64,000 bases of DNA, taken from Oikopleura dioica. Lineage: Eukaryota > Animalia > Chordata. The notes under the pieces were generated by a model that searched no databases, was not told where the DNA came from, and saw only the letters and a list, made by a program, of their open reading frames with translations. Both the position numbers and the translations under genes were made by a program. The first letter of the stretch is position 1; each line of letters starts with the position of its first letter. Positions 3,001-60,685 of the stretch are shown here, in pieces. Where the stretch lies: contig OU015569.1 in assembly GCA_907165135.1 (NCBI GenBank), positions 11,718,001 through 11,782,000 on the forward strand, read 5' to 3'.

Positions 3001-3550
3001 TTCTACACAGATTGGCAAGCCGAGCACAATCATTTTTGATAAATATGAAGCCGTCCCAGAAGCTGCGAGCTGAAAAATGTATGAACAACTGGCTGATCGA
3101 CATTTTCATATTCTGCTTCGATTCTAGCGTTGTTTTCCGCCAATCGTCGGTTGTGGTAATTTACTTCTGCGTCCGAAATGCCCGCTGAAGCCTGCGCCAT
3201 TTGCCGTTCGATTTCCGTCACTCTCGGATTTCCAGAATTTTGTCGATTGTTGAGACTTTCGCTGATCGCGCCCTGAATTTTCAAATTCAATATCTGAAAA
3301 TCATCAATTTCCAAATCAAAAAGTTGGTACTTGAATCTCTTGCTCGTCTCTTGAAATTCCAGCCTGGAGAGCGATATTCGTCGATTGCTGGTCATTTCCA
3401 AATTCAAGATTTGTGTTTTCGCTTCTTTCATTTTTAAGTTTTAGAAATTGAACTTTTTTATTTCGCTAATTTAAAATTAAATTTCCTGTAATTTTCGCGC
3501 AGCGAGTTGAGAATCGCCTGACTGAGATCGTCATCGTCGAAATCGTTCAT
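1..3550 (-). CDS. Ankyrin repeat and SOCS box (ASB2/14/15-like) protein, multi-exon, 3' end runs off the window
   Basis: Ankyrin exons (ETPLFLAVEK, RGWTPLHEAAA, FGVTPLFTAVISG, RAPIHLAAM). The distal exon (DPLKCITVAVG...LLQMGLDAEHLFKC) resembles ASB2-type C-terminal repeats. The putative first exon MNDFDDDDLSQAILNSL is UIM-like. GC-AG intron at 270-312. The SOCS box is not visible in the window. Confidence 0.8.
1625..1782. mobile_element. Palindromic MITE with GG-starting TIR and 8-bp TSD (Merlin-like ends)
   Basis: TIR GGGGAGGTGTCTGGAACCGAC / GTCTGTTCCAGACGCCATCCC, flanked by GAAAATTA at 1617-1624 and 1783-1790. An inverted second copy lies at about 20787-20942. Confidence 0.75.
2708..2894. 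repeat. 13-bp tandem array (TCAGGACCCTGAG)n, about 14 units, derived from the MITE arm
   Basis: Read directly. The unit overlaps the CCTGAGTCAGG core of the CTGGGCTCGG MITE family; MITE arms flank it at about 2620-2660 and 2927-3020. Confidence 0.9.
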
Positions 3551-5140: not shown

Positions 5141-5470
5141 CTGGGCTTGGCAACCTGTTCAGAAACGGAAGCTAGGCCCTGAATAACCAAAAATGAATAG
5201 CCGCGTAGCGGCTTTTAAAACGTAGCCGCGAAGCGGCTTGCCAAGAATTTTAATACGATTAAAATGGGTATACTAGCGAGCCGCTTTGCGGCTTCGTTTC
5301 AAAAAGCCGCTACGCGGCTTTTAATTTTAGATTTTTCAGAGCCTGACTCAGTTTTTTTTACTCAGGTTGCTGAGCCTGGCTGTTTAGAAAACCTGAGTCA
5401 GGGTCTGAAAAAGCTTTGATACTAATTGAAAATATCAGGCCCTGACTCAGGTTTTCTTCAACTTTAAACT
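5141..5470. mobile_element. CTGGGCTCGG-family MITE abutting or nested in a second copy
   Basis: CTGGGCTTGGCAACCTG ... CAGGTTGCTGAGCCTGG with an AAAAGCCGCGTAGCGGC palindromic core, followed directly by a second arm pair (AACCTGAGTCAGGG ... CCCTGACTCAGGTT). Confidence 0.75.
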
Positions 5471-5871: not shown

Positions 5872-8800
5872 ATGAAGTTGTCAAGTGCTCTTTTGGCAGT
5901 TTCTGCTTACAGCAGGTACTTTTTCATCCAAAAAAGAGGTTTTTTTTCTAGCACGTTTTTTTCAGCCCAACTCAGTTGAATGCTGATAAGGCGACAGAAG
6001 TAGACACGAAAGATGCTGGCTGGATCAGCTGCTACTACACCAACTGGTCCCAGTACCGGCCAGACTATGGCACGTACTTTCCGGAAGACATGGACGCCTC
6101 TCTCTGCACCCATCTGATCTACGCTTTTGCCGAAATGCACAATACAGGTAAACATACAGCTCCTTTTTTCACGGCCAAAGAATGTTTGGCAAAGGTGTTC
6201 CAAAATGATTCTGATCAGCTGATAGCAGGTGGAGAGGTAGATTATTATCAGTTTCTGGGAGTATTAGAGCATGACCTTGGGTATAAAAATTGACGGAAAG
6301 GAGTCAAGAATCAGAATTTTAAAATGAAACAAAACCTAGCCAAAGTTCTCCGATCCCGACAGGAATCATTTTTTCTATAAATAAATATTTCTTTAAAATG
6401 ATACATTATTAATTGATCTACGTACTAAGTATTCCAGACGTCAATAAAAATGATTGAAATTTATGCACCTTTATTATCTTAGTATCAGTCTTATCTTAGT
6501 ATCTTTAATTGAGCGGCCCATTTTTCCTGTGTAATTTAGCGCTGTCTTTGAAAACCTTACGTCTTAATTGGCGCTCCCTAAATTGCAACAAAAACAGCTC
6601 TTTCGTACGTTTATCTGAAGAGCCATTTATTAAGGCAGCGAATGGACGATCAAGGAGTACGAATGGAACGACGAGGCAATGTACGCCAGATTCATGGCGA
6701 ACAAAAAGGGCGCAAAGACGCTCCTCGCCGTCGGCGGCTGGAATCACGGAAGCACTCGATTCACCCAAATGCTCGACTCTGGCGAAAGTGGAATTCGAAA
6801 ATGGGCCCAAAACTCCATCGCCTTCTGCAAGCGACACGGCTTCGACGGCTTCGATGTCGATTGGGAGTACCCAGCGATGACGACTGTCGACGTTTCGCCT
6901 CAAGAAGACTATTACCGGTACCAGCGAATGATCGAAATTCTCAGGGAAGAAGTCGACAAGCACCCAGGTTTGAAAACTGGGCTCGGCAACCTGAATAGAA
7001 AACCTGAGTCAGGGTCCGCAAGAGCAAAAATGAAAAGCCGCGTAGCGGCTTTTAGAAACGAAGCCGCGAAGCGGCTTCGCAAGATTATTATTCCATCTTA
7101 TATTTAAATTCTAGCGAAGCCGCCTTGCGGCTTCGTTTCTAAAAAGCCGCTACGCGGCTTTTCATTTTTGCTCTTGCAGACCCTGACTCAGGTTTTCTAC
7201 TCAGGTTGCCGAGCCCAGTTCGAAAATAATCATGAAAAATAGCGACTTTACCTCTAAATTAGGCTTCTTGCTGACTGTTGCCGTCGGCATCCCAGAAAAA
7301 ATGATCTACCGAATCGACGGAAAGAACCCGGCGTACGACGTCGTCCATTTGACGCAACACGTGGACATGGTCAATTTGATGGCGTACGACGTGCACGGTC
7401 ATTGGGAGGACAAGACTGGACACCAAATGCCGGCCCACATCAAAAGAGCCGACGACCGACTGGGCTACACCGACAGCGTCGAGTGGATTTTGGAAAACTG
7501 GATCGTCCAAGGCGCGAATCCCCAGAAGTTGAGCTTGGGACTCGCCTCCTACGGTCGTGGCTTCACCCTGGAATCCTCCGCCAATCACGGGTACATGGCT
7601 CCCGCCAAGCTCGACACCAACACCGGACTCTACTCTGGCGCGCCGGGCAAGTACACTCGCGAGCCGGGCTTCTTGTCTTACTACGAAATCTGCGAGAAGA
7701 TCAACGAAGGCTGGAAGACGGTCTGGGACGAGGAGATCTCAGCCACTTACGCTCACGGCGGCGACCAATGGATCGGCTTTGACAACGAAGAAAGCATCCG
7801 ATACAAGGTAAGAACCTTGTCTAGCTCAGTTCGTAAACCTGAGTCAGGGTTTTAAAGGAGCTTTAAGGACCCCCGTCAGCTTTTTCGAAAAATCGAATTT
7901 CGGAATTTTTAAATTTTGACCCCGGAAATGGATTCTTCGGGTCAAAAAACGATTTTGAGGCTTCATTTTTGGGGGTCTTTCTCGACTCCTTCACCCCCAA
8001 AATCGCATTTGAAAATTGGACTTTTCGCCGAAAATTGACGAATTTGCCCTAATTTTGGCAAAAATATCGAATTTTCTTGGTCAAATATTCCTCTTATCAG
8101 GTTTTTGAAGCAAGGTTAACCTGAGGACGCATTAACAACCAAAAATATGGCGTTTTTCAAAATTTCCATTTCTTGGAGAAAAGGCTGACGGGGGTCCTTA
8201 ATAAGTGAAGCCCTTATTTGATTCCACCAAAAGATAGTTCAATCCTTTATCTATTTTGTTCCTAAGACGGGAATATTAAATTTGGGTAATTTTTAACACA
8301 AAAATTTTCCATCAAAATTGGTTTTCTTTGAAAATTTTCAGCTGGCAGATTTGAGCGCAACTGAAAAATCCAAAAATATTGGAAATTGAAATTTGTGGTT
8401 CAAGAAACTTGCGCTTTTGAAAAAAGATAAGGGTGTCACTCAATTAAATCGATGAGAGAAAAGGAAAAAATAAGTAAATTTTCCAGGTGAAATTGGCGAA
8501 ACACTACCGCCTCGGTGGAATTATGTGGTGGACACTTGACGACGACGACTTCAAAGGTAACATTCAGGTCAACACTTGGTATTTTCTCCGCGAAACGAAT
8601 TTTGAAAATCGCGATTAGGAAACTACTGCGGATCTCGATATCCTCTTCTTTCCGCTGGTTACGACGAGTGGTTCCACGGCGGAGCAGCGCCAACCGGCGG
8701 CCCGACCACACCTAATTCATCAACCACGAGGTCGACAACTACAACTAAGCAAACAACGACCTCGAACGGTGTCACGCCCGATTGCGGTAACTCGCCTGAC

Positions 8801-9589: not shown

Positions 9590-12500
9590 TCAAAGCTCGT
9601 CGTGGTGGATGCGCCCGTGGTCGGTGAAACCGGAGGCGATGAAGGTGTCGTACGCGCGGAGAAATTCGTTCTTTGAGATTACCTTGTCCTGGGCTCAGCA
9701 ACCTGTGTTGAAAACCTGAGTCAGGGCCTGGAAGATCTTTCAGACCCTGACTCAGGTTTTGAACACAGGCTGCTGAGCCCATCCCTCGTCGTCGTTCAAA
9801 TCGGCAGTGTTGATTAAATGGCGGATTTCCCCGTCGAACCAGCTGATTCCTGGCGGATCTACCAGCTCATCTAGCTCGCTTCCTTGTTTTTTATAAATGT
9901 TTACGATTGACACTAAGGCTGGCAAGTGTACCTTCTAAAAGTCCGTTTTTCGTCTTGTCGTGGAAAGAGAACGTTCTTCGCTCCAGCTCAACACGTGGCG
10001 CCTCATCCTCCGAAATTTCCTTTCGCAGGTCGATGTCGTATTGCATCAAATATTCCTCTTTGAAAAGGGGTGTGGCATTGAGAAAGATAGCGCCGTTTGA
10101 TTGTCATAATAGCTTGTCAGTGATAGCTTCTGTATTAGAAGTAATCACGAATAAATCGACAAATGCATAGTTTTTTTATCTTTCCGAAAGTTTCTAATTT
10201 TTATCAAAAAATTAAGAAAAAGAGAAAAATTTATATTATTTTTCTCAGAGATTTAATTTCAAAGTGACACCCTTAATTTTAACCAATGAAATCTTTGCCC
10301 AGTTCCACCCTATAAACCTTAGAACACCATACCTTTTTGGAATCAGAGGAAAATTTTTAGAAGATTGATCATTTTTAATTTTGAAAAAATCCCTTCCGGT
10401 GCGATTCTAGAGCCTGAAATTTAAAATTCATCAGCACCTTTCTAAAATGCCTTCCGACAGTGACATATTACATTAAATTCGAGCTTGTGTCATTACAGAG
10501 CCTTTTTTAAATTTGGGGCTCTAGAATCGCACCGGAAAAGATTTTTCCAAGATTAAAAAGGATCAATCTTCTTGAAATTTTCCACCGATTCCAAAAGGTA
10601 TGGTTTTCTAGGGCTTATAAGGTGGAACTGGGCTGATATTTCATTGGTTAGAATTAAGGGTATCACTTTGATAATTTTTATAAGATAATTTTTTTCAATT
10701 TTAAAAAAATTTTTAAATAAATAATATATTTAGAAAATTAAAAAAATTATCTTATGAAAATTATCAAAGTGACACCCTTAATCTTAGCTATTAGCTGATT
10801 ATCATCGCCAATACCACACTCTTCAAAACAAAAAAATGAACTTACCAAAGTTGATCATTCCGTCGTGGTTGGAATCCAAGTCTGCGATAAACTCCTTGAC
10901 AAATAGATACTTTGTTCGTTCGTAATTTCGCGGGAAAAGGAAAGCTCCAAATTCAAGCTCTTTTTAGAAGGGAAAATCAACTTGAAAAAAGACGCGTAAT
11001 GAGAGTGTTCTAAATCGAATTCGAGGAGTCGCCACGATTTCGAGATTTCGGCGCTTTCGACTTTGAAGCTATGAAATAACGTTGGCTGCAAATTGGTGGC
11101 CACTCGCGCCTCAAGATCAATATTTTAGCAAGGAGAAGGTGTTGCTCCCTCGTTCCTGAAAGTTGAAGATCCTTGTCTTCGTCGGCCGCGCGGAAGATTT
11201 CCACATTGACCAAGTAGAGCGATTCATGCTCCACTTCGTTTTCGTTTATTCCCAAGGTTTGAAGCAGTTCGTTTTCATCCACGAGTCTTTTTGTAGGTAA
11301 AAAGAAGTTCAATGATAATATTGAGATATAATGCCTACAGATGTCTTAAAATGTCTGTAGATGTCTGTAGATGTCTTTAGATGTCTGAAATGTCTATAGA
11401 TGTCTACAAATGTCTAGAGATGTCTTAAGATGTCTAAAAATAACTAAAAATGTCTATAAATGTCTACAGATGTCTAAAGATGTCTACAAATGTCGATGAA
11501 TGTCAACTGTATTTTTATTTCCTTTGAACAAGGCATTTATTGGATTTAGAAAAAGAGCTCATTTCGCACTTTTTGGCCCAAAAAGGTGTAATTTTCAAAA
11601 ATTATAATTTTGGTCAATTTAAGTAAGGGAAAAGGCTTCTTTTTCGGAGATTAAAGTTTAAGGATCTCCATTAAAATTGCCACGTGAAGAATTCTTCTCA
11701 CGAATTGACAATTAACTGTTAACTCGTTTTTACCAGTTGCCCATTCCCGTTGATGTCAAATTTCGGAAACTAAAAGAGGTGATTTTGAAAAATAAATTGA
11801 CGAAATTTTGGCTTTTACGGATATTTTAACATCGCGTTTGACAATATGGTCCTCGAGTTTGTGCATCCACTGGTGGATTTCCTCGTATTCGATCGTCTGG
11901 TTCTGGTTGCTGTCGACTTTGGCGAAGATCTTGGCCAGTGACTCGTGCTGTTCTTTCGCCGTCATGTGCAAGAGCTACCTTTTGGGACGAGAAGAAAGAA
12001 TGCAAAATTTAAACAAAAAAGTTGTGAGCTGTGGGAAAAGGGAGTTAACGCACGTGAGGCCTAAATAAAGCACAACAAGCTAATCCAAAACAGGAAGGCT
12101 AAATCTGAGGTGCAAACTTTCAGAGCTTAAAAACGACTCCTACTCAACAAAAACTAAACTCTGTTTTGCGAAAATAAATTCCTCTTTAAGGAGACACCCC
12201 TAGCTTTTGTAATAGAGTAAAATTATATTGAGATATAATGTCTACAGATGTCTTAAAATGTCTGCAGATGTCTGTAGATGTCTTTAGATGTCTGAAATGT
12301 CTATAAATGTCTATAGAATGTCTATAGATGTCAACAGATGTCTAGAGATGTCTAAAGATGTCTACAATGTCTATAGATGTCTATGAATGTCTGTAGATGT
12401 CTAAAAATGTCTTAAAATGTCTGAAGATGTCTAAAGATGTCAACAAATAACCATGTTTGTCTACTCGACAAAAAAACTAAACTCTGTTTTGCGAAAATAA

Positions 12501-18878: not shown

Positions 18879-21687
18879 ATGCGGAAGATTTTGATTTTCT
18901 CGACTTTTTTAAGTTTAATCCTTCAAGCAGTTGCAGTTACAAGTATGTCAATTAATTTTAACGGAAAAAAATAATCTTATTTTTAATTTTTAGGCGAAGA
19001 TATTTTACGAGGCAGAGTTTTACACACGAAGTTCGAATTCTAGCCTCGAAAACCTGTGTATAAATCCTGAGTCAGGGTTCTAAAAGGGGCCTGTAGCCAG
19101 CTCTTTCAGGACCCTGACTCAGGATTTATACACCTGGGCTCGGCAGCCTATTTAGAAAACCTGAGTGAGGGTATTTAAGTTTTAAAATGAAAAGCCGCGT
19201 AGCGGCTATTAAAAAACGAAGCCGCAAAGCGGCTTCGCCAGAATACGAATATTAAATTTAAGACTATTTTGCAAAGACGCTCTGCGGCTTCTTTTTTTTA
19301 AAAAGCCGCTACGCGGCTTTTCAGCTTAAAACTTTAATACCCTGACTCAGGTTTTCCACACAGGTTGCCGAGCCCAGTTTTACACAGGCGTTCTATTTTA
19401 GTGAAAAAGCCGTCTAAATCGTCGATCCACGGGGTAATTATTAAGGATCGCTGGTCAAAAACATCCGTTTATACTTAATTCTTGATTCAAAACGCATCAT
19501 TCTTTTCCTTTTTGTATTCTAATTTCTTTGTAAAATGCACGGGGTAAAAACTCGATCGTGAAACTCAATAAGTAAAAGACTTGTGGCGAAATGGCAACGT
19601 TTTGAATGAAAAATCCCGCTTCCGGATTCGTTTTCTTTCACTTCAAAGTAAGTTCGATTAAATCTTTGCAATTTGGATTTTGATTCATCTGACTTGAAGA
19701 CGGCGCCACGATCGTTTTGAGCAGCTCTTGTGCTATCTGTCCACGAGGAGTATTGCAGCTAAAGAGGTAACAATCTCAGATCGTTCTAAATCGGATAGCG
19801 TCTGCTAGACACGCTCTAGCGTCGCCTCTAAAGCGCGGCACATACAAAAGCATCTGAAAAAAGAGCTCATCGTGGCTTTTTTCAGAAAGTTTTTCATTCG
19901 AATCTTTTTCAGCGCCAATTCCGGCCGCGTTCAATCGCTGCAGCTGTTGGATGAGCGAGGAATGACGCTGGTGGCGGAGCACTCGCTGGAGAAAGATTTA
20001 TTCGACACGTTAGGTCGCGGGCGATGCCTTACCCTCGCGCTCGCGGTAGATAAGAGCCTCTTGCATGAGCTATTGCGAAAATAGATTTTTGGCTGAGTTG
20101 AAAAAATTTTCTTAAAATTTTGCTTTTCCCCAAGAAGGACCCATAAAAAGGGTAAAAATTCACATAAATTTCGGCCCTAAGCTCGGCAACCTGTGTAAAA
20201 ACCTGAGTCAGGGTCTGAGCGACGTTTTCATCAATGGTCTTTCGGAACCTGACTAAGGTTTTCTACACAGGTTGCCGAGCTCACCATCTAAGGCTAAGGC
20301 TGGAGTCTTTAGCTAGTTTTCGACTCAAAAGATTTTTCCAACTTTTCGCTCAATTTTCTATTTTCTCGTTTCTTTCGGAAACAATCTAATATTCCTGAAA
20401 AAGCATCATCCCTTCTGAGACAACAACAGGCCCGGTTCAAAAATACGCTTCGAAAATCGCATTTCCGCGCGATAAAAAGTAAAGAATTCCACGTTGCAGC
20501 CAAATAGAGAGAGGCTCTATAATCTCGACTGTCCATTTTTCATAAGCAAAGTGTCGACTTTCCTTATTCAATTATTGTCAGTGCATCAGCACGGCGCATA
20601 CCTCTTGAACCCAGCGCCAGTACCAGCGGATTCCATTTGGACCTCAGATTCGGCACGTTTTCAAGCTCAGCTAAAAAGGCCTAAAAATGGGGTCCCCATT
20701 TTATCGGGCTAATACTTCTGAATGTTTAGCGGGGCTACACCAAAAAATGACCCTTTTCTCAGTTAGGGGTTAGGGTTAGAGGACAGGGGGATGGTGTGTG
20801 GAACCGACAAAAATTCGACAAATTTTGCGTGGGCGGTTACTCTTATGCTGATTGACCGTTTTGCAAAATCCAGGCTTCTGATTGGTTGAAAATTTCCACG
20901 CAAAATTTGTCGATTTTTTATGTCGGTTCCAGACACCTCCCCACAGGGAAAACTTACTAGGGGTCCCAACCCTAACCCTAACCCTGCGTTAGGCTTAAGA
21001 TTAGGGGCTGCCCGACCGATAACCCCTACTACCTTCGTGGAAACAGTTTAAAACAAGAAGATTCTTTCAAGATAGCATAAAAATCCTTTGAATCAAAAAA
21101 TTTGATTTATTTTTCGATTATCTCTGAAATCACTTAAAAACTTCAAAATTATTTTATTTTAAAGAAAGTTCGCATTAGAAAGTCTTTCGGAATTCGTCCA
21201 CGATTCTTCCTTGTCTTTAATGATGCTAGATTATCTAAAATTAAACGCAAGAAAAATAATTTCTTTTTCAAATAAAGCCGACCGGAACAATATAAACGAA
21301 CACTAACTTTATCACATACTTTTTACGTCACGTAATAGAGCGCTAATTACCAAAAAAGCAAAATAAGAAAACGAAATTTCTAAAGAGGCGATTGTGTGAA
21401 TTTGAGTTTGTCTGAATGGCAAATTCTCGGCCAAATCTGTAACGAGCTTAACCATTATTTTGGGCGCGCAAGAAATCAAAATCGCGCTTGAAAACGACTT
21501 CGAAGGCGAAAGCGATAGCTTCAGGATTTTCATCAACGAAAAAGAGCTTGGACGCTTGAATGTGCAATTTCCGCCCTTGACGCTGCGCGAAATTTTTGTC
21601 AAGGGCTTGGACGATTCCGATATTTTGAACATCTTTCACATTACTCAGCAGCCGCCCATTTCGGCGAAACACATCTTTCTTGAGTAA
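18879..21687 (+). CDS. Secreted protein of unknown function (multi-exon, 3' end uncertain)
   Basis: Signal peptide MRKILIFSTFLSLILQAVAVT followed by a GT-AG intron; further coding-like exons at about 19870-20010 and 21460-21685 ending in a GTAAGT donor. Confidence 0.4.
19134..19377. mobile_element. CTGGGCTCGG-family MITE nested in the right arm of another copy (host about 19045-19390)
   Basis: TSD TTATACAC / TTTTACAC; the host arm resumes as AGGCG. Confidence 0.88.
20787..20942. mobile_element. Second (inverted) copy of the 1625-1782 MITE
   Basis: Same TIR and CCAATCAG-containing core in reverse orientation. Confidence 0.8.
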
Positions 21688-23179: not shown

Positions 23180-25605
23180 CGAAAGACATTCCAGAAGATA
23201 GGGCGCACTTCTGCGGGTTCGTTTCAATTTCAATTTCGATTGAATCTTAATCTCATCCTTTTTACTTAGCGGTTCGATAATCGGCAAACGGTGGATTGTT
23301 ACGGCGGCGCACTGTATCACGGACACGTCGCTTTTCAATTTCAACTTCCAGGCAAGCAATTTTCTGCTTTGATTATTTTCCAGGTCAAGAGAGTGGTTTT
23401 TAGAAGAGAAAAAACATAAACGCGTCCCAGTAGCTTATCTGCTTGACTTGCAAAACAGCGAAAAATAAATAATTACGTGCTCCCACAAAATACAAAATGT
23501 AGAAAATACATTTTTTTCTAAAAACTTTTTCAAAAAATATTTTTAAAAGAAAAAAATTTTTGGTTCTATTAATAAAAAATTACGTAGTGATACCCTTATT
23601 TTTAAGAGCTACAAAGCTGAATAATCTCACAAAATTTTACGAAGAGAGACCCTTATTTTATCGTTCAAAAATGCAACTTAGGTCTTTATTTTGTTTGTCT
23701 TTGAAAAAAATATTAAAACTAAGGGGGTAGACAGCTATGAACCCAATTTTTGTGCAGATTTATCTTTGAGAGGGACACCCTTATTGTCCCACTAAATTGA
23801 TTTGAGATGACAAGCTGAGCGACTAGTTTTCTTTTGTTTTGTCTTAATAAGGTTGTAACTATGGTTTATCTCGAAGAGAAATGTTCTCGAAAATTGCAAT
23901 AATCGCTGTCTACCCCCTTAATTTTACCTTTTCTTCTCTAAGAAAAACAAAGTTTATTGCCGAGTTGCATTTTAGCGAGATAAAATAAGGGTGTCTCTTC
24001 GTTAAATGATTACAAATGGTATCTCTTCTGGAGAAGCTTTTTCTAAATTATCAACTGAATAAATTTCTTACTTCAGAAATTCCGCAACAACAAAGCGGCT
24101 TATTTGAGGAATTATGTGGAGAAAATTTTTGTGCGTGTTGGAACACATCTCGGGTATGGCCAGGCGCGGGGCTGATTTATTTCTTTTCTCGCTACACCAG
24201 CCAAGTATGCATATATTTATGAAAGAAAAGAGCCCGCGAATGAGCAGAATCCGTATTCGTCCGTTTTTGATGGAACGAAAAATGTGAATATCTCGGACGT
24301 GGTGGTCAAGGCCGAATTCTGCGGCTGGAAGAGCTCCGGAAACATAAAGCGCTGTATGGAAGTAAAAACGCGTAATTTTGAATAAGCAAGTTGACCAAGT
24401 TGCTTTCAGCGATCGCGAGCTGACGATATTGCGCCTGGGCTCGGCGACCTGTGTAAGAACCTGAGTCAGGGTCTGGAAGATCTCTAATGAAACGCCATAC
24501 CCTGACTCAGGTTTTCCACACAGGTTGCCGAACCCAGCATCGCGCTCATTCGCCTCGCCGAAGAGATCGAATTCGACGAAAATACTCAACCCATCTGCCT
24601 CTCGCGAACTCATCAATCCGCCCTTTTTCCGCCCGGATCGTGTTGTACAATCGTCGGCTGGGGTTTGACGGGCAACACGAATACGTGGAATCCGGCGGCG
24701 GCGAAGATGCTTCAAAAGGCTTCGATTCCTATCCAAAGCTGGGCTCGGCAACCTGTGGATAAACCTGAGTCAGGGCCCTGAAATAACTCTGACTCAGGTT
24801 TCTACACAGGTTGCCGAGCCGAGATCCAAAGGCAGCGCGTTTTTTTTCATCCAAAACTTTCCCATCACGGCGAAAAGCGCTATTTCTCAAGCTGAGATCC
24901 TTTGTTCTATTTAAAAAACGCGCTCGACCGTGAAAAACTTTGCCAGCGCTTACAAGGCTGGACGGAAAAGGGAATGGTTTGCGCGGGCATGGGCGCTCAG
25001 GATACCTGTAGTGGCGATTCTGGCGGCCCACTGAGCTGCTCTGCTTTTATTTCCGGTAAGAAAAGCGCTCGTTTCCTCCTTGTTTTCAAATCCTTGTTTC
25101 TTGTTTAGAAAATTCAACTACACGCACTTGGTTCCTCCGCGGAGTCACCAGCTTTGGCGACGCGCATTGTGGCTCGGGAAATCCAGTTAAGGTTTTATTT
25201 TCTAGCTTCTTTCTCAATTTCAATGATGATCAATGATGATCATATGTATTTTTGATAATTAAAAATTGATTGAAAAACCAACTAAAAGCTGCCTATGCTG
25301 ATGTTGACGAGTACACCGAATGGATTACCGAGCAGATTTACAGAGGTAGGCTACAGTGAGCTTGAAAACCTGTGTAGAAACCTGAGTCAGGGTCCAGAAA
25401 GAGCTTTCATAAAAGCCGCGTAGCGGCTATTTTCCTAAGGAAGCCGCAAAGGAGCTTTGTCAAAAATACCATCTTAGTCGGGGTTTTTGACCCTGACTCA
25501 GGTTTCTACACAGGTTGCCCAGCCCGGACAGTAAGATAACCGTTTCAATCAAACTTTTCTTTTTTAGTGGAAAATGAAAAAATGGAATCAGATCCGAATT
25601 ACTGA
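23180..25605 (+). CDS. Trypsin-like S1A serine protease (5' end uncertain)
   Basis: HFCG|GSIIGKRWIVTAAHC (His), ADDIALIRL (Asp), QPICL, IVGWG, MVCAG, QDTCSGDSGGPL (Ser, with an Asp at S1), WFLRGVTSFG. Confidence 0.88.
24435..24537. mobile_element. CTGGGCTCGG-family MITE inserted at the catalytic-Asp D-I-A-L codons
   Basis: TSD TATTGCGC / CATCGCGC; arms CTGGGCTCGGCGACCTGTG / CACAGGTTGCCGAACCCAG. Confidence 0.9.
24739..24823. mobile_element. CTGGGCTCGG-family MITE at a protease exon/intron edge
   Basis: Perfect TSD ATCCAAAG at 24731-24738 and 24824-24831. Confidence 0.9.
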
Positions 25606-44983: not shown

Positions 44984-45542
44984 TTTCAAAAGTGAAGTGA
45001 AGAAATAAAGCTAAGGAAATCATTAAAAGTTTTGCTCGTAAAATGAAACAGCTGCAAAGAATGAACCCAGAAACGGGTCGTTTCGTTAGTTTTTTCTCGT
45101 CTGCTTTTTTACGATCATCGGAGCAGCGCAATCAGCATTTCCGCTTACTTTTTAAAATGTCAAAGTCAAGAGCGCTAGGAGCGTAGAGTCTGTAGACTAG
45201 GGTCCGGCAAGTGGTTTGGGGTGGTCAACTTGAAGCGGTCTTATATATACCCTCGTGATCCCTATGATCTGGGGATTATAAAAATGTATGACTCATCACC
45301 ATACGAGTTGGGAATAGGATTCTAGAGTCATTTGAAGTTCTAAAAAATGAATTTTTTTGTTTTCTCTTTTTGTTAAAGATAAGTGCCCAAGGGGGTTTTA
45401 AGGCACGCAGATTTCAAAAAATATTGTCTCAAAAGCGCCCGAGGGCATTTTTCATTTATATCAGACGAAAAATATATTTTTTTGATTTGGAAAAATGATC
45501 AAAAACTTTCGTTATTTTCAACGCTTTTTAAAAAATTGCGAT

Positions 45543-46557
45543 GGGGCCCGAAGGGCCGTTTCCCCCCCTTCCCTGGCTTTTAATTAAATTTGGGCTTGAC
45601 GGCCCGAAGGGCCGTTTCCCTCCCTTCCCTGGCTTTTAATTAAATTTGGGCTTGACGGCCCGAAGGGCCGTTTCCCCCCCTTCCCTGGCTTTTAATTAAA
45701 TTTGGGCTTGACGGCCCGAAGGGCCGTTTCCCCTTCCCTGGCTTTTAATTAAATTTGGGCTTGACGGCCCGAAGGGCCGTTTCCCCTTCCCTGGCTTTTA
45801 ATTAAATTTGGGCTTGACGGCCCGAAGGGCCGTTTCCCTTGCCTGGCTATTAATTAAATTTGGGCTTGACGGCCCGAAGGGCCGTTTCCCCTTCCCTGGC
45901 TTTTAATTAAATTTGGGCTTGACGGCCCGAAGGGCCGTTTCCCCTTCCCTGGCTTTTAATTAAATTTGGGCTTGACGGCCCGAAGGGCCGTTTCCCCTTC
46001 CTGGCTTTTAATTAAATTTGGGCTTGACGGCCCGAAGGGCCGTTTCCCCTTCCCTGGCTTTTAATTAAATTTGGGCTTGACGGCCCGAAGGGCCGTTTCC
46101 CCTTCCCTGGCTTTTAATTAAATTTGGGCTTGACGGCCCGAAGGGCCGTTTCCCCTTCCCTGGCTTTTAATTAAATTTGGGCTTGACGGCCCGAAGGGCC
46201 GTTTCCCCTTCCCTGGCTTTTAATTAAATTTGGGCTTGACGGCCCGAAGGGCCGTTTCCCCTTCCCTGGCTTTTAATTAAATTTGGGCTTGACGGCCCGA
46301 AGGGCCGTTTCCCTTCCCTGGCTTTTAATTAAATTTGGGCTTGACGGCCCGAAGGGCCGTTTCCCCTTCCCTGGCTTTTAATTAAATTTGGGCTTGACGG
46401 CCCGAAGGGCCGTTTCCCCTTCCCTGGCTTTTAATTAAATTTGGGCTTGACGGCCCGAAGGGCCGTTTCCCCCCCTTCCCTGGCTTTTAATTAAATTTGG
46501 GCTTGACGGCCCGAAGGGCCGTTTCCCCCCCTTCCCTGGCTTTTAATTAAATTTGGG
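45543..46557. repeat. 53-bp hairpin satellite, about 19 units
   Basis: Unit GGGCTTGACGGCCCGAAGGGCCGTTTCCCCTTCCCTGGCTTTTAATTAAATTT. Confidence 0.97.
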
Positions 46558-47084
46558 TATCAGCTCTTTGTTCCCAATATATCGAGCTTTACGTCACTGA
46601 TTCGACTCAACGCGCTCAAAGGTGAAAAAGATCAAGTTCACGTGAGCAATTTATCCGATTTATCTGAACTGAGAAAATCGAGTAAGTTATTTATATTCGA
46701 GTTGGCAGTTGTTTCGCGGCGAAAGGAGAAAATGAAAGGCTCGTTTTCAAATAGGTGTCATTTTTAAAGAGAGGAAGAGTCCTTTTATATTTGGAATAGG
46801 GACCACAGGCTAATTTCAAAGCTCTAATTATGGCACAGGTGCCGAAATTAAATGAGTTAGATACTTTGATTTATTTAAATAATGCCTGCCGCAACTATTT
46901 ATGACACGATCAGCATTGATTCTATCTGGTCAAAAATATCTCTTAAGGATATAGCCGTTCTCAAGGCACTTTCGTAGCGCTAAAAGGGGACGATAAAATT
47001 TTTTCATTTCAAAAGGAACCCTACCTAAAATTGCCTAAGAAACCCGATTCTAGTGTTTTTTTTAATTTTTTTATGGAAAAATTT

Positions 47085-47560
47085 GTCTTTAGAGCAATTT
47101 TAAATCTTACGATCACTTTTTCTCGAAAATTTTCCATTAAATCGGTCGAGTTTTTTTGATAAATTAAAAATTTGGACCTTTCTCTACATTCCTAGGGTCT
47201 AAAGTTAAATAGATTCCAATTATTTATGATTCTAGCGCCATTTTTATGAGGCTTACTTGAGTAAGCCGAAGCGTCAGACAGCGCTCTGGTTTGCTGCGCT
47301 GGGCGCCCTCCTCTATCGCGCGGTGAGGCTGGCATGTGAAAGAGCGCGCTGATTGGTCGAGCGCCCTGAACGCAGCATTTATGAAAAAGAAAAGCCAAAA
47401 AGAAGAAGACGCTAGAATGAAAATTTGCTCGGGTTTTGAAATTTTGAGGCCCTAGGAAGATAGATTAGCAGTTATCTATAATAATACACGGTTTAGTTTT
47501 AGCGATTTAATCGAAAAATTTCGAGAAAAAGTGATCGTGAGATTTCAAATTGCTCTAGAG
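47085..47560. mobile_element. Foldback MITE inside the composite element
   Basis: AGAGCAATTTTAAATCTTACGATCACTTTTTCTCGAAA is inverted to TTTCGAGAAAAAGTGATCGTGAGATTTCAAATTGCTCT; there is an inner CCTAGGGTCT / GGCCCTAGG pair. Confidence 0.7.
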
Positions 47561-47901
47561 TAGGGTCCGGCAAGTGGTTTGGGGTGGTCAACTTGAAGCG
47601 GTCTTATATATACCCTCGTGATCCCTATGATCTGGGGATTATAAAAATGTATGACTCATCACCATACGAGTTGGGAATAGGATTCTAGAGTCATTTGAAG
47701 TTCTAAAAATGAATTTTTGTTTTCTCTTTTGTTAAAGATAAGTGCCCAAGGGGGTTTTAAGGCACGCAGATTTCAAAAAATATTGTCTCAAAAGCGCCCG
47801 AGGGCATTTTTCATTTATATCAGACGAAAAATATATTTTTTTGATTTGGAAAAATGATCAAAAACTTTCGTTATTTTCAACGCTTTTTAAAAAATTGCGA
47901 T

Positions 47902-49494
47902 GGGGCCCGAAGGGCCGTTTCCCCCCCTTCCCTGGCTTTTAATTAAATTTGGGCTTGACGGCCCGAAGGGCCGTTTCCCTCCCTTCCCTGGCTTTTAATT
48001 AAATTTGGGCTTGACGGCCCGAAGGGCCGTTTCCCCCCCTTCCCTGGCTTTTAATTAAATTTGGGCTTGACGGCCCGAAGGGCCGTTTCCCTTCCCTGGC
48101 TTTTAATTAAATTTGGGCTTGACGGCCCGAAGGGCCGTTTCCCCTTCCCTGGCTTTTAATTAAATTTGGGCTTGACGGCCCGAAGGGCCGTTTCCCCTTG
48201 CCTGGCTATTAATTAAATTTGGGCTTGACGGCCCGAAGGGCCGTTTCCCTTCCCTGGCTTTTAATTAAATTTGGGCTTGACGGCCCGAAGGGCCGTTTCC
48301 CCTTCCCTGGCTTTTAATTAAATTTGGGCTTGACGGCCCGAAGGGCCGTTTCCCTTCCCTGGCTTTTAATTAAATTTGGGCTTGACGGCCCGAAGGGCCG
48401 TTTCCCTTCCCTGGCTTTTAATTAAATTTGGGCTTGACGGCCCGAAGGGCCGTTTCCCCTTCCCTGGCTTTTAATTAAATTTGGGCTTGACGGCCCGAAG
48501 GGCCGTTTCCCCTTCCCTGGCTTTTAATTAAATTTGGGCTTGACGGCCCGAAGGGCCGTTTCCCCTTCCTGGCTTTTAATTAAATTTGGGCTTGACGGCC
48601 CGAAGGGCCGTTTCCCTTCCCTGGCTTTTAATTAAATTTGGGCTTGACGGCCCGAAGGGCCGTTTCCCCTTCCCTGGCTTTTAATTAAATTTGGGCTTGA
48701 CGGCCCGAAGGGCCGTTTCCCCTTCCCTGGCTTTTAATTAAATTTGGGCTTGACGGCCCGAAGGGCCGTTTCCCCTTCCCTGGCTTTTAATTAAATTTGG
48801 GCTTGACGGCCCGAAGGGCCGTTTCCCCTTCCCTGGCTTTTAATTAAATTTGGGCTTGACGGCCCGAAGGGCCGTTTCCCCTTCCCTGGCTTTTAATTAA
48901 ATTTGGGCTTGACGGCCCGAAGGGCCGTTTCCCTTCCCTGGCTTTTAATTAAATTTGGGCTTGACGGCCCGAAGGGCCGTTTCCCCTTCCTGGCTTTTAA
49001 TTAAATTTGGGCTTGACGGCCCGAAGGGCCGTTTCCCCTTCCCTGGCTTTTAATTAAATTTGGGCTTGACGGCCCGAAGGGCCGTTTCCCCTTCCCTGGC
49101 TTTTAATTAAATTTGGGCTTGACGGCCCGAAGGGCCGTTTCCCCTTCCCTGGCTTTTAATTAAATTTGGGCTTGACGGCCCGAAGGGCCGTTTCCCCTTC
49201 CCTGGCTTTTAATTAAATTTGGGCTTGACGGCCCGAAGGGCCGTTTCCCCTTCCCTGGCTTTTAATTAAATTTGGGCTTGACGGCCCGAAGGGCCGTTTC
49301 CCCTTCCCTGGCTTTTAATTAAATTTGGGCTTGACGGCCCGAAGGGCCGTTTCCCCTTCCCTGGCTTTTAATTAAATTTGGGCTTGACGGCCCGAAGGGC
49401 CGTTTCCCCTTCCCTGGCTTTTAATTAAATTTGGGCTTGACGGCCCGAAGGGCCGTTTCCCCTTCCCTGGCTTTTAATTAAATTTTGGCTTGAC
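47902..49494. repeat. 53-bp hairpin satellite, about 30 units
   Basis: Same unit as 45543-46557. Confidence 0.97.
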
Positions 49495-50377
49495 ATAGGC
49501 AGGGAACTTAAATGTTCAAGACTGAGTTGATCAATTTCAGTTTTGTCCCTATCCCCGCCCACACCCATTTTTTATTAAATCTGAATTGTTCCAATTTCAA
49601 AAATCGTTATGGTTTTTATATAACCGCATTCTTTTTCAGAACACCGAAATGATTTTCATTATTATTATTTATGTATATTATTATTATGTTATAGTTTATA
49701 ATAATTTTTATGATTAATGTGAAGTTTATTGCATATCGATTACGGCTCTTTAGACCATCTTCAGTGCAAAGAGAACTAGAAAAAGAGGAATTGTAACTCC
49801 TCGTTACTCCTTTCTAAGCAAATATCTTCAAGCAAAAGTCCTCCGGAGGACTTTCCCAAGGCTGAAATATCGTATTTCAACCTCGAAAACCTTAAATATC
49901 TTACGATTCCCAACTCGACAAAGAGTGATTGACACTCCTATTTGTAGATTAGAGTCTGCGCTATTATAATCAAGAAAGTTTTACGCTTCAAGTTGAACTT
50001 TACTGTATTAAATTTTTGATTGAAACTCATAGAAAGGTGAAATTTCGGCGTTTGTTGAACTTTGAACGGGAATTTTTCCAAGAAAACATTGATGAAATTC
50101 TATCAATGATCTCTTAAAATGAAGCTCAGAGTCTGTTCTTTAAGTTAAATGATCAACCGATCAAAATATATGACTACAGTAAAATTTTTCTTAATAAAAA
50201 CAATGATAACCCAAAAAACTCTCAAAAATCCTCAAAATTGCCTGTAAATTTTTTCTAGTTGGGTTTCAAGCTTCACTGTAATGGAATAAAATATGTTTTT
50301 TGACCTGAAGAATTCGATAAAAGTGAAATGGGCTAATAAAAATCTGACCCTCATCCATGCCGGACCCTACTGTAGAC

Positions 50378-55496: not shown

Positions 55497-57495
55497 TTTT
55501 CGGTTTTGATTCGCACTTATTAACGCACAATAATTCACGGGTAAATTATCTGAAGATCAAATTTATGTTTTCATCAAAATCTCATGAAAAATATTGGCCG
55601 TACAAAAGAATAAATACAGAAGCAGTAAATAAGGTAGCACGCTTGAAACTTTAAAAGATCTTCGTAATTAAAGATTATTTTATTTTATTGTTCAAAATCA
55701 GATGAGCTAACGAGCTTACAACTTCATGCAATTTCGACCAGCCAATTTTGGATCAAAATTTTCTTTTTCTTTTTGACTAACTTTTCTATAGCATAACCTC
55801 TATGCTCTTTCTGGTGGTGGTCTCAGATTCTTCAAAATTTCAACTAAGGTGACGAGTCCGTTAAATGAAAAAATACCGTCAAAAGCTCCTCAAGATCAAA
55901 AGCTCATTTTCGTCAAGCCACACTACTTATTGTGCAAAATTCTTGAACTTGAAGATCAAAGAAGCCTGACAACGATCGAAATGCTCTGTTTTATAAAATT
56001 TAGTTTTGCATAAAATATTTCAGAAAATATTTCATCCAAGACCTCTTTCGTTTTTTTTTCCTGGATTTAGAATATAAATCATAGCTTCTATTGAATTCTA
56101 GCGATGGAAAAGAAGGTGCTCTTTTTTACGAAATAATCTCTGCAAAAGGCACAACTTGCTGGTGCGTTCGTATTACGAGCCGCTCATAATTGTATCGGCA
56201 GCATAACTCAGACTAGAGGTAGTAGGTTCTTTGATAGCTGGCAAAGCTTTTAGCAATCGCGCACCGCCATCTACACTCGTTTAAGAGCCTAGCGTTTTTT
56301 GAGAACTCGGAAAATCTTGCCATCCGATTCTCATAAAAATGCTTTCCAATCTTCGTCTAAATGCCAGTGAGACAGGACGTGCCCAAATTTGCATATGAAG
56401 CAATTTGTAAAACTCATAAAAATTATCACTCAGTAATTAATTCCATAATTCTCTTCCTTGATTTCTGCCTGAAAAACAATTGACAATTCAATTTTAACAG
56501 ATGCTCTAACAAATGAAATAATAGGGTGTCAGAGTGTCAGTATATTAAACTATCACTTAGAAACTCCCATTGAACTTAGCTTTCTTCTTTCTTTTTTTCT
56601 TCAGAAAGTAAATTAACGCTGTGGTCAGCCGAAAAAGGAGCCTTCAAAAGAATCCATCAATAATTGACTGTTTTACTGAGTCTCAACTTGAGAAGACCCT
56701 CAAGTCCGTCGTTACTAGCAAAAGATTTGAAAGACCTTTATTTTCTGCTGAGAAAATAGCTTTAAGCTATTTAATAAATCCGTTGGTAAAAGGGCAGACG
56801 TTATTTAATGTCGACCGCGAAGTAGTAATTTATTGAGCCAGGCAATCATAAACGATGTTTTCATTCCGACTTTTGCGAAGAGTTGGATCTCTAATCTTTT
56901 AACGACCTAAGCCAATAATTCTTCGGAATAACTTCGGCTTTCTATAAGATAAAGGGCTAAATGAAGTCGATGATGCCTTGATGCTGCTAAATCAATGATA
57001 GAAATGAGAATCAATTCTCAAAGAGAATCGAGGAAGAGACCATAAATGAGCTCTGGCTCGTAGAATATCATCTGATTGAATTTTATATTAAGCGATCAAA
57101 TGTATCAGAAAATGGTGCTTCTGACTACTATCCACTGCTACTATCTTTATTATCAGAATCCCTTGAATCTCTACATTGTAGACTCTACAATGTAGAGTCT
57201 ACAAATTTCTCGATATTTTTGGAACCTCCGAATTCGGACGTTTAGCTTTTTCTAAGTTTTCTCTAAAATTTTTTTGGGTCAGAGCCACACCTAAATTAAC
57301 CTAAGTTCTAGTCGTTTTTTTTTTTTTGCAATCAACGAGAATTTCTTTTGATAACCGTCTAACTTTTTATATTTAATTTTCATTAATTTTTTCATTTTAG
57401 GGTCGCCTTACTAAGTTTTGCTTATCGTTTTGCTGAAGCGAACGGAGCTTAGTGTAAAAGTGAAAGAATCAACAAGATTATGGTTTGATATTTTT

Positions 57496-59074
57496 TTATT
57501 TGTTTGGATTGTATCTGTACATAGACCGTTGTTCGAATTTCAATGCAATAGTCGTCGCTCGCTTCTTTCCAAGAATTTTCTGCACTTGTTCGAAGTCAGA
57601 AATTGGTCGTGCTTCGCGGATTCGCTTGGAGTAAGTCGGGCCGATGCCGGTGAGCAAATCGTCAAAGCAGCTAACGATGTTGAGAAAGTCGACAAACGCT
57701 TTGTGGGAAGAAGTATCGCCCTCGATCTCTCGGAGATGTGCAATTATGGTCTCGAACATGGCGAGATCCTGTTCGAATAGATCATCAGGCTGGCTGGGTC
57801 CGCATTGCCAAGGATCCAATATGGCCCATACTCTCGGTGGGTGAAGGCGCCAAGCCGAGGCAGGGAGATGCAACGTGGCCACCGCCAAATGCTAACTCCC
57901 GCAGAGGCAGCACCTCGGCACAACTCGAGGGTGGTGAGGCCACTCTCAGCATGTGATGGCTGAGCTGATGGTCAAACATAATGAGCGAGTTGAGCAGATC
58001 AAGCTCAACCCCCGGATGAGCCGCAAGTTTGGAGATAAGGAGTCCAAGAAATTAAATACTCTTAAAACATCGCATGTGGGGTTTTTTGATGCGAGGAATC
58101 CGAATCTGATGTCAAAAATGATTTTTAATGTCCAGTTTTCAAAGGGCAGTGATTTACGCTAGATTTCCTGCCCTTATAAAGGTATTTCCTCGATCCTGTA
58201 ATTAACTACATGGGACAGATCGGCTCTCGGACAGCAGGTGAGTTTCGCCGCGGTTGATCGGATAAATGTAAAAGTTTCAGTAAATACTAATGACTTCTCC
58301 TTATACCATTAAAATTGACTTGAAAAATCCATAAGTGCAGTCGACTACATCTTCTGTTCCATGTTAATGAATCCTGGAGGACAGGAATCTTTGGACAGGA
58401 ATCTCGCTTACATTACTGCCCTGTTAAAACTAGACATTTTTGACATCAGATTCGGATTCGTCGCATCAAAAAACCCTACTAGAGAAACTTTCAGTCAATT
58501 CAATTTTTTCCCTCCATATCTCCAAATTTGCAGCTCATCCGGGGGTCGAGCTTTAATCAGCTCACTTCGCTCATTATGTTTGCACACAGCTCAGCCATCA
58601 CACGCTGAGAGTAGCCTCGCCAGCGTCGAGTTGGGCCGAGGTGCTGCCTCTGCGGGAGTTAGCACTTGGCGGTGGTCACGATGCATCTCCCTGCCTCGGC
58701 TTGGCGCCTTCACCCACCGAGAGTATGGACCATATTGGATCCTTGGCAATGCGGACTACCCCATCAGGCTGGGTGATTCCTTCGGGAGGGCAGCTTTCTT
58801 TCTTGAGCTTTTCGAGCTCTTTGCTGTATGCTTCTCGTTCCACACGACGTTTCCACTTCAGAGAAATGAGTTTTCTTTCCAACTCGTTGATTTCCGGGTC
58901 CATTTTAGCGATTTGGTCCCACTTCTTTCTGAGGGCGAAGTTATTTTCTCGAAGATGCTGGGTGTACTCTTCCACAGTCTTTGTCTTCTTTGATTTATTC
59001 TTCACTGAATCATCGGTGGCCTTTCGTTTTTCTGGTTGAGTGGTGGTTTTATGGATATCTTGCTGAGTATTCAT
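57496..59074 (-). CDS. Coiled-coil plus helix-hairpin-helix protein, split by a foldback insertion
   Basis: Exon 59074-58760 (basic and coiled-coil) and exon 57789-57496 with FVDFLN...LLTGIGPTYSKRI (HhH-like). Removing the insert and one repeat copy restores a 600-nt ORF. Confidence 0.7.
57794..58761. mobile_element. About 970-bp foldback element with about 400-bp imperfect arms
   Basis: 57798-58180 is the reverse complement of about 58380-58756. An 11-bp direct repeat CATCAGGCTGG lies at 57783-57793 and 58762-58772. The left end is CTGGGTCCGCA. Confidence 0.88.
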
Positions 59075-59607
59075 TTTTATGAAGTTCTATTTTTCACATG
59101 CTTATTTATATCCGCAAGATCAGTTAGATGGCGCTACTTGAAGAAAGCAGATGTTCCAGAGTCTGGACTCCAGATTGTCCGGAACTGAACAAATGACCAG
59201 CCGAGAATAAAAATGCCATCATTTGATGATAACCATCACTATCTACAAAGAGCAATCAAAAAAGAAAAGAACTTGAGTGGACTGTACTTGAGTAGACAAT
59301 ATGATATTGGACCAATATCCTAGTACAGATCCGGCAATAATGTACCTAGAAAGATCAATTTGAGTTTCTTCTCTTTGTGAAATATTGCTAGGGCCGACGA
59401 GCAAAAAATCAACCCCAAGTACCCCTTGATGGAAACGCCCGAAACTTTGTAGAAGTGTTTATTTTAGCCCAATTGAAAAAATTATTATATAATAATAATT
59501 TTATTATTATTATTATTTAACAATTGTATAATATTTATTATATTGCGATACCTCGAAGCTTAGAATAAAAGCGACACCTCTTTGGTAGAAAAATTCACTT
59601 AAAAGCG

Positions 59608-59814
59608 ATGGAGAGACGAAATAACGAGCTCAAGTTTGAGGATTACGAGTCGGATGATCCTGAGAGAGCTCTAATAGGGCGCCTGTTTTGGAAGCCCCTG
59701 AAAGACATTGCTGCGAGTCTCCGTTTCAAAGACTTCCAATGCAAAATATGCCGCGAAGACATTGTAGATCCAGTAGTGACGGCCTGCTGCGACAGTTATG
59801 TTATTGCAGTTTGA
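59608..59814 (+). pseudogene. Truncated paralog of the adjacent RING gene
   Basis: ESDDPER...FWKPL...CKICREDIVDPVVTACCD, then a stop mid-RING. Confidence 0.6.
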
Positions 59815-59974
59815 GTAGTTAAAGAGCAGAGGTCTTCGTGTAGGTAGCAGTTTCGTGATCGAGAAAGATGATTGAGATTCTGTTTTGTGGACGAAATTTT
59901 GCGATTCTTCGGCGCCTGGTATAAAAGCGAGTTTCGTTTGCTGAAAACCTCACTCTCAAAATTAGTTTTGAAAG

Positions 59975-60685
59975 ATGGAGAGACCAAATTACGAGCTGCT
60001 GAAATTTGACGGTAACGAGTCAGATGATCCTGAGAGATCTCCAACAGGAGGCGTATTTTGGAAGCCCCTAAATGAAGATGGCACCGCTGCAAGACTTCAA
60101 CATGAAGATTTTCTTTGCAGAGAGTGTCGAAACGAGATTGATGATCCAGTAGTGACATCTTGCTGCGACAAATATGTTTGCCGAAAATGCTGGACAAACG
60201 ATCTTCACTCGCCCAAGCGTGATACTTATCATCTTGAATGTCCTATTTGTTGGAGCAGAGTTTCTTACAATCCGCCTATTCATAGTCACTGGTCTTATTC
60301 GCGCGGAACATTTTATCCTGCTTCAAAGTTTTATCTGAAGATGATAAATGCGCGAATGGTTCGATGCCGTGATAAAGAGTGCAAGGTAAAAGTCGCATTT
60401 AACTTTTTTTTTCTTCAACGAATTTTTAGATGGAAATGAAATATGAAGATTTCGATGAACACTGGAAAAAGTCATGCAGACGACTTGTCAGGTCAGATCT
60501 AATGTTTTCGGGAATCAGGATTGATAGAAAATTATAGATGTGATTTTTGCTACACAGAAAGTCGAGTATTTGAGGATCACCTGTGCGAAGGAAAATTTCA
60601 CGCGAAAAAAGAAGAGATGAAAAAGGAGCTTCAGGTTCAAGAAGAAAAGAACGAGGACTTGATGGCTAGACTTGGATATTACTAG
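59975..60685 (+). CDS. RING-like plus TRAF-type zinc-finger protein
   Basis: CRECRNEIDDPVVTSCCDKYVCRKC...CPIC, then CRDKECK|MEMKYEDFDEHWKKSC and a C-terminal coiled coil. Confidence 0.7.

Follow-up and report, generated by a model that had tools for sequence, protein, structure and literature searches.

A probable transposon insertion in the coding exon of Oikopleura dioica gene g16779, with a predicted candidate intron

The gene g16779 of Oikopleura dioica very probably carries a young insertion of a multicopy, non-autonomous DNA transposon in its single coding exon. The element is most likely hAT-like with an 8-bp target-site duplication, and the intron that might remove it, annotated in the public gene model, is a candidate. 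We analyzed a 64-kb stretch of DNA (hereafter the window, in which positions are counted unless a locus is named), whose source is the X-specific chromosome OU015569.1 of Oikopleura dioica OKI2018_I69, as recognized from a locus fetched via a protein match. This is a published and annotated tunicate genome (PMC8008620). The insertion into g16779 is strongly supported by two empty sites, by the multicopy nature of the element family and by an independent copy of one end. Moreover, the features by which class II non-autonomous transposons are recognized, namely terminal inverted repeats, a flanking duplication and a homologous empty site, are all present.

In the scenario that we favor, a 971-bp element with arms of ~385 bp would have entered the single coding exon after residue D104, between the two halves of the protein, most likely making an 8-bp duplication next to hAT-like ends (CTGGG... 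and ATGGGG...). An unspliced transcript would then yield a 132-aa protein that lacks the helix-hairpin-helix half, and the full-length protein would be made only if the element were removed as an intron of 970-991 nt. Such removal would pair the GT within the element's GTAG bulge with an AG in the duplicated target (giving 202 aa) or with an AG 21 nt further on (giving the 195 aa of the public model).

Host gene and empty sites

The public locus of g16779.t1 (protein P0001, 195 aa; locus L002) is base-identical to window positions 57496-59074 on the minus strand. P0001 is matched by both coding parts of the window, one on each side of the annotated intron, and a protein search with the downstream ORF matched three proteins of Oikopleura dioica OKI2018_I69. 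The features discussed below are collected in Table 1.

Table 1. Coordinates of the inserted element, its host gene and the candidate splice sites in the window
Feature	Positions	Strand	Remarks
Host gene g16779, upstream coding part	58762-59074	-	start codon at 59074; residues 1-104, predicted coiled-coil-like N-terminal half
Host gene g16779, downstream coding part	57496-57793	-	helix-hairpin-helix half; stop codon 57496-57498
Non-autonomous long-terminal-inverted-repeat (foldback-like) DNA transposon	57794-58764		971 bp under the 8-bp duplication model; end at 58761 under the 11-bp model
Left arm	57794-58165		from gapped arm alignment; end reads CTGGGTCCGCATTGCC...
Central unpaired region (loop)	58166-58399		AT-richer; near single-copy depth; arm identity falls to 36-50%
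Right arm	58400-58764		gene strand begins ATGGGGTAGTCCGCATTGCC; 4 extra bases (GTAG) relative to left arm
Target-site duplication copy CAGGCTGG (8-bp model)	57786-57793		perfect repeat extends to 11 bp (57783-57793)
Target-site duplication copy CAGGCTGG (8-bp model)	58765-58772		perfect repeat extends to 11 bp (58762-58772)
Candidate 5' splice site GTAGTC (GGG/GTAGTC; G of GT at 58759)	58754-58759	-	used by the public model and by the initial annotation
Candidate 3' splice site of the initial annotation, CCCAGCCAG/ (G of AG at 57790)	57790-57798	-	970-nt phase-0 intron, 3 added residues, 202 aa
Implied 3' splice site of public model g16779.t1, GAACAG/	57769-57774	-	991-nt intron, 195 aa, ...ITQPDG/DLAMF...

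The initial annotation of this DNA described a foldback element that splits a helix-hairpin-helix gene, and this description is borne out by the inverted repeat, the 11-bp flanking repeat and a match to HHH_3-repeat proteins. The g16779 protein has no direct match in Pfam, and a profile of three paralogs matches many HHH_3-repeat proteins at profile positions 145-188, with E-values down to 5e-20; the label of 'HhH gene' is thus a fair one. The same profile found a fourth X-linked paralog, g16343 (P0004). Hence, g16779 is one of at least four X-linked paralogs in the Okinawa lineage of Oikopleura dioica, and it encodes a small protein that combines a predicted coiled-coil-like half with a helix-hairpin-helix half. 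The element lies in the conserved PPEGITQPDDLF linker that joins the N-terminal and the helix-hairpin-helix halves.

Removal of positions 57794-58761 together with one copy of the 11-bp repeat restores, as had been claimed, a continuous ORF of 600 nt and 199 aa (...GITQPDDLFEQ...). This restored ORF aligns without an indel at the site to the paralog g16761 (P0002, locus L001), which is 91% identical in DNA and is located ~59 kb away, just before the window start. An uninterrupted paralog had been sought, and g16761 provides it, with the site reading ...ATCACCCAGCCAGATGATCT... and carrying no indel. In addition, a Tara Oceans metagenome contig (L004, 1179 nt; P0043, 202 aa) carries a relative without the interruption, and the site in this relative, CCAGCCTGATG, agrees letter for letter with the sequence duplicated in g16779. 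Both g16761 and L004 read GGAATCACCCAGCC(T/A)GATGATCT without any indel. L004 has two BLAST matches to the window, one breaking off at 58762 and the other resuming at 57796; 14 nt of the query fall in both matches, which is the signature of a target-site duplication.

Comparison of g16779 with g16761 gives a dS of 0.185 and a dN/dS of 0.40. When amino-acid changes are polarized by g13692, five fall on the host lineage versus eight on that of g16761. On the basis of these counts and of the dN/dS value, the host gene bears no sign of decay yet, which is compatible with a very recent insertion as well as with a gene that is still functional.

Several further observations concern the surroundings of g16779. 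The gene and a divergently oriented RING-finger neighbor (59975-60685) have been duplicated together, with window positions 56992-60671 corresponding to L001:4069-6848. Within this block, identity is 89% in the intergenic parts and only about 70% in the RING gene. In DNA run X1, a contig over the left junction (window 57492-57820) reaches 27 nt into the element. Between 57651 and 57676 this contig has 14 other letters and a 6-nt gap, matching the version of the protein found in g16761 and L004 (ITHFECSGKV), and it may represent an allele, gene conversion between the paralogs g16779 and g16761, or a chimeric contig. In DNA run X5, which carries a different organism label, a 4.4-kb contig joins 56923 to 59823 through 592 other letters. 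From this contig it follows that the host gene copy of that organism is either absent at 56924-59822 or diverged by more than 8%.

Structure, copies and class of the element

Identity between the two arms is 94% in their outer 170 nt (57798-57967 versus 58587-58756), and it is 77.5% when the element is compared over its full length with its reverse complement. Aligned with gaps, the arms extend over ~385 bp and leave a non-pairing loop of ~230 bp, with arm identity at ~90% over the first ~250 bp and at 66-76% further in. The initial annotation had called the arms GC-rich, coding-like and about 400 bp long. Their length is close to this figure, and the outer ~250 bp of each arm are indeed 55-61% G+C versus 41% for the genome window. 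However, their coding-like appearance found no counterpart among known proteins, as the sole match of two arm frames to 5.8 billion proteins is another copy of the element, and six arm ORFs have no match in Pfam. A captured host exon, also sought in the arms, is consequently set aside as unsupported, since neither the protein search nor the Pfam scan matched one.

Other copies of the arms were sought as well, and these were found. In X1, summed contig depth is 31-35 over the flanks and 230-368 over the arms (230-244 for the left arm). In X5, the corresponding values are 52 over the flanks and 221-1243 over the arms (221-744 for the left arm). These sums indicate several to many arm copies and are not themselves a copy number. 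The loop has a depth of 55 in X1 and 108 in X5, which is ~1.7-2x flank depth in both. The family is even more abundant in X5 than in X1. Moreover, two metagenome contigs (L006 and L007) carry a 43-aa ORF that was matched by one of the arm frames. Over 268 nt these contigs are 90.7% identical to the right arm, they have a different flank, and their similarity to the arm ends further in. Two exact arm patterns searched against metagenome contigs revealed no further copies, and there are none elsewhere in the 64-kb window or in loci L001, L003 and L005. Based upon the excess of arm depth in two DNA runs and the independent end copy in the metagenome contigs, the element is multicopy and resides at unrelated places.

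It follows from this multicopy nature that the structure is not a local inverted duplication. The possibility that the arms arose by such a duplication, or by an assembly artefact, with a coincidental flanking repeat, would be in keeping with the absence of another copy within the window. However, it is refuted by the arm depth in two independent DNA runs, where contigs run from the element end into other flanks, by the separate metagenome copy and by the exact empty sites in two homologous sequences. Furthermore, a perfect repeat of 8-11 bp abutting both ends has a chance probability of at most 1.5e-5. We therefore regard this origin as exceedingly improbable.

The exact boundaries of the element are linked to the length of the duplication. 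A perfect 11-bp direct repeat, CATCAGGCTGG, abuts both ends, and the initial annotation allowed for either an 11-bp, Mutator-like duplication or one of 8 bp with CTGGG/ATGGG ends. The 8-bp option has become the better supported one, because L006 and L007 share the ATG with the right arm end, together with the G-run and TAGTCC. By the same token, the element end is more likely to be 58764 than the 58761 given originally. Read on the gene strand, the junction in the host is CCAGCCTG-ATG-GGGTAGTCCGC, and that in the independent copy is ACAAAAA-ATG-GGGGTAGTCCGC; the AT before the G-run is common to both, and the length of the G-run differs by one G. Since these bases are shared at differing flanks, they probably belong to the element, and this points to a duplication of 8 bp. 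Thus, it is more likely that the duplication is 8 bp long (CAGGCTGG on the plus strand) than 11 bp and that the element has CTGGG/ATGGG ends, a choice that rests on one independent copy and on the two contigs (one from X1, one from X5) that exit the element into unrelated sequence at 58764, two other contigs (both from X1) doing so at 58762.

Under the 8-bp model the ends are CTGGG-TCCGCATTGCC and ATGGG-GTAG-TCCGCATTGCC. The extra GTAG is present in L006 and L007 and also, without a gap, in contig 12 of X5, which covers 58587-58764. From its presence in these copies, GTAG is a property of this end of the family and not a mutation at the g16779 locus.

Mutator-like elements typically have long terminal repeats (hundreds of bp) and make duplications of 9-11 bp. 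Such an element with a true 11-bp duplication (CATCAGGCTGG) would agree with the length of the perfect repeat, with the long arms of ~385 bp and with the two contigs that leave the element at 58762. However, the AT before the G-run is shared by L006 and L007 in spite of their different flank, so that three of the 11 repeat bases are probably part of the element, and one contig each from X1 and X5 matches through 58764. The ends given by the 11-bp model (CTGGGTCC and GGGTAGTCC) also do not line up, whereas the 8-bp model yields (C/A)TGGG at either end, a form also seen in other elements of the window. Likewise, Pack-MULEs resemble the element in having long terminal inverted repeats but differ from it in that no captured gene fragment was found in its arms. 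Hence, we consider a Mutator-like identity unlikely.

An 8-bp duplication made by a hAT-like element is the probable alternative to this, and the probable duplication length and the resemblance to a neighboring element speak for it. The neighbor (45198-50369) is flanked by a perfect 8-bp duplication (CTGTAGAC) and terminates in TAGGGTCCGGCA, and it fits the hAT pattern in both its end (TAGGG...) and its target (CTGTAGAC). The element in g16779 nevertheless differs from hAT elements, which have 8-bp duplications and short YARNG ends. It ends in CTGGG and ATGGGG rather than in CAGNG/TAGNG, its arms are hundreds of bp long, and its target (CAGGCTGG/CCAGCCTG) does not fit nTnnnnAn in either orientation. 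It also has no transposase partner here, as no ORF with a family match occurs in the element and no ORF of at least 90 aa occurs in the 5.2-kb neighbor.

The initial annotation had grouped the 8-bp duplication and the CTGGG/ATGGG ends with those of other elements in the window, and this grouping holds, since two window MITEs carry these ends and the 45198-50369 element has a close variant of them. The two MITEs (9681-9790 and 24427-24545) belong to a single family, ending in CTGGGCTCAGCA / ATGGGCTCAGCA and having the core CCTGTGT...CCTGAGTCAGG in common. They lie in coding-looking sequence, their flanking 8-mers match at only 6 of 8 positions, and a further copy is found at L001:39-140. The 5.2-kb element contains an extra internal copy of its end at 47554-47572 and looks composite and non-autonomous.

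Elements of the foldback type with very long inverted repeats include Galileo (P superfamily, 7-bp duplication) and the FB elements of Drosophila. When compared by description, these share with the g16779 element two long inverted arms that make up nearly all of its length and degenerate internally, a short loop, a short duplication (7-9 bp) and a lack of coding capacity. However, the arms of the g16779 element are not built of tandem subrepeats.

Candidate splice sites and the prospect of a new intron

The GT-AG pair proposed initially, which runs from 58759 to 57790 and would add only three residues, does exist in frame. Nevertheless, it carries little weight as evidence for an intron. More than 40 in-frame, stop-free G-N...AG pairs lie within 40 nt of the junctions, and five of these are GT-AG pairs using one of the two GT dinucleotides at the first bases of the element. 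An in-frame pair is thus expected by chance and is no evidence of selection. Moreover, the public model uses a different acceptor, at 57769, and its splice replaces the conserved DLFEQ with G. The terminal AG of the element itself (57794), if joined to the GT donor, would add 13 bases and so shift the frame into a stop codon. Unspliced read-through of the upstream part meets a stop codon at 58676-58678, after 132 aa.

The proposal that the intron would be a giant hairpin agrees with the predicted fold of the transcript, in which a stem of ~385 bp has an energy of -660 kcal/mol. In this predicted structure GUAG forms a 4-nt bulge at the base of the stem, and the candidate acceptors are 1-26 nt beyond it. 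It is plausible that such pairing, by bringing the splice sites together, could aid splicing.

The public gene models were made with AUGUSTUS and RNA-seq hints (PMC8008620), and through these hints the annotated g16779 intron could be supported by reads. The RNA contig sets listed contain none of the gene's sampled words. RNA runs X11 and X13 have one and eight partial reads, respectively, over 5.9 kb, with spurious matches of ~30 nt, and none on the rhomboid or RING neighbors either. The name O. dioica covers a set of cryptic species whose split dates to ~25 million years ago (bioRxiv 10.1101/2023.05.09.539028). RNA runs under the O. dioica label may for this reason come from another lineage.

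Among the routes by which Oikopleura has gained introns, transposon insertion is listed with indirect evidence (Denoeud et al. 2010, via PMC3443670, Table 1). Fritillaria borealis has introns derived from transposons, or 'introners', in which the ends of non-autonomous DNA transposons act as splice sites (Henriet et al. 2019, via PMC11282704; bioRxiv 10.1101/2025.08.15.670264). The g16779 element resembles these larvacean introners in being a non-autonomous DNA transposon with terminal inverted repeats and a duplication, inside coding sequence and in the same animal group, and its candidate splice sites are likewise drawn from an element end and the duplicated target. In contrast, the Fritillaria introners are short MITEs with non-canonical AG-AC/AG-AT ends and RNA evidence, whereas the g16779 element is 971 bp long with ~385-bp arms and has candidate GT-AG sites. 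The path from transposon to intron is already described in larvaceans, and the g16779 locus would be a further example, unusually clean and unusually large, its intron being a candidate only.

It is possible, although we lean against it, that the element is already a working spliceosomal intron. The stem would juxtapose the GT of the GUAG bulge with an AG of the target, the U2 spliceosome would excise either 970 nt or 991 nt, and the functional product would have 202 or 195 aa, respectively. In-frame GT-AG pairs do exist, and the public RNA-hinted model uses one of them (PMC8008620). Both halves of the ORF are intact with no excess of changes on the host lineage, the predicted fold puts the donor in a bulge at the base of the stem, and GTAG belongs to that end of the family rather than to a local mutation; the larvacean precedents point the same way. 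However, chance would be enough to produce in-frame pairs, use of the AG at the very end of the element causes a frameshift, and no read or contig shows the junction, the RNA runs having no reads on the neighboring genes either. The donor GTAGTC and both acceptors differ from the cleaner short introns of the window, whose signals are of the GTAAGT and TTTYCAG types; this is a qualitative impression of strength, as a matrix from the short ORF-joining introns of the window was too noisy. In addition, the median intron of the O. dioica genome measures 49 nt (PMC8008620), and the existence of close paralogs makes a null allele tolerable. That the element is spliced efficiently enough to matter is somewhat doubtful. 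We find it rather more credible that it simply cripples a redundant young duplicate, with the public intron being the bridge of a gene-finder.

A bolder proposal is that the entire family acts as an Oikopleura introner. The one-sided GTAG would serve as a built-in 5' splice site, an AG at or just beyond the other end would complete the intron, and exonic insertions in that orientation would be tolerated. The g16779 locus would then be an intron caught at birth, and a giant one made of double-stranded RNA. We judge this to be quite improbable.

The two outcomes for g16779 differ in what they would mean. If RNA of the Okinawa lineage shows the junction, then this locus would provide a dated and base-exact birth of an intron from a transposon in a chordate, for which the ancestral empty site survives in a paralog and also in a wild relative. 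As the new intron would form a nearly perfect hairpin of ~385 bp, one would have to ask how the spliceosome shares such a substrate with the pathways that act on double-stranded RNA. If the element is not spliced, then it would be an ordinary transposon knockout of a redundant duplicate, and the 195-aa protein of public model g16779.t1 is probably not made.

Other repeats in the window

A search of the region for structured RNA families gave only a sub-threshold match to mir-460, at 57160-57206 and outside the element, which is probably due to chance (23.8 bits versus a gathering score of 52). In the same interval, perfect palindromes of 14 nt overlap each other (CTCTACATTGTAGA...). Positions 59334-59530, shortly upstream of the host gene, hold another multicopy repeat, with a depth of 334 in X1 and 812 in X5 versus flanks of 31 and 52. 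Many contigs break within it at 59383-59389 and at 59419, and AT-rich nested palindromes occupy 59476-59543. A palindromic repeat family of ~240 bp is also present, with copies in the window at 5141-5382, 6977-7218 and 19134-19377 and in L003 at 12-249 and 3094-3329; these copies match on both strands, with 76-83% identity.
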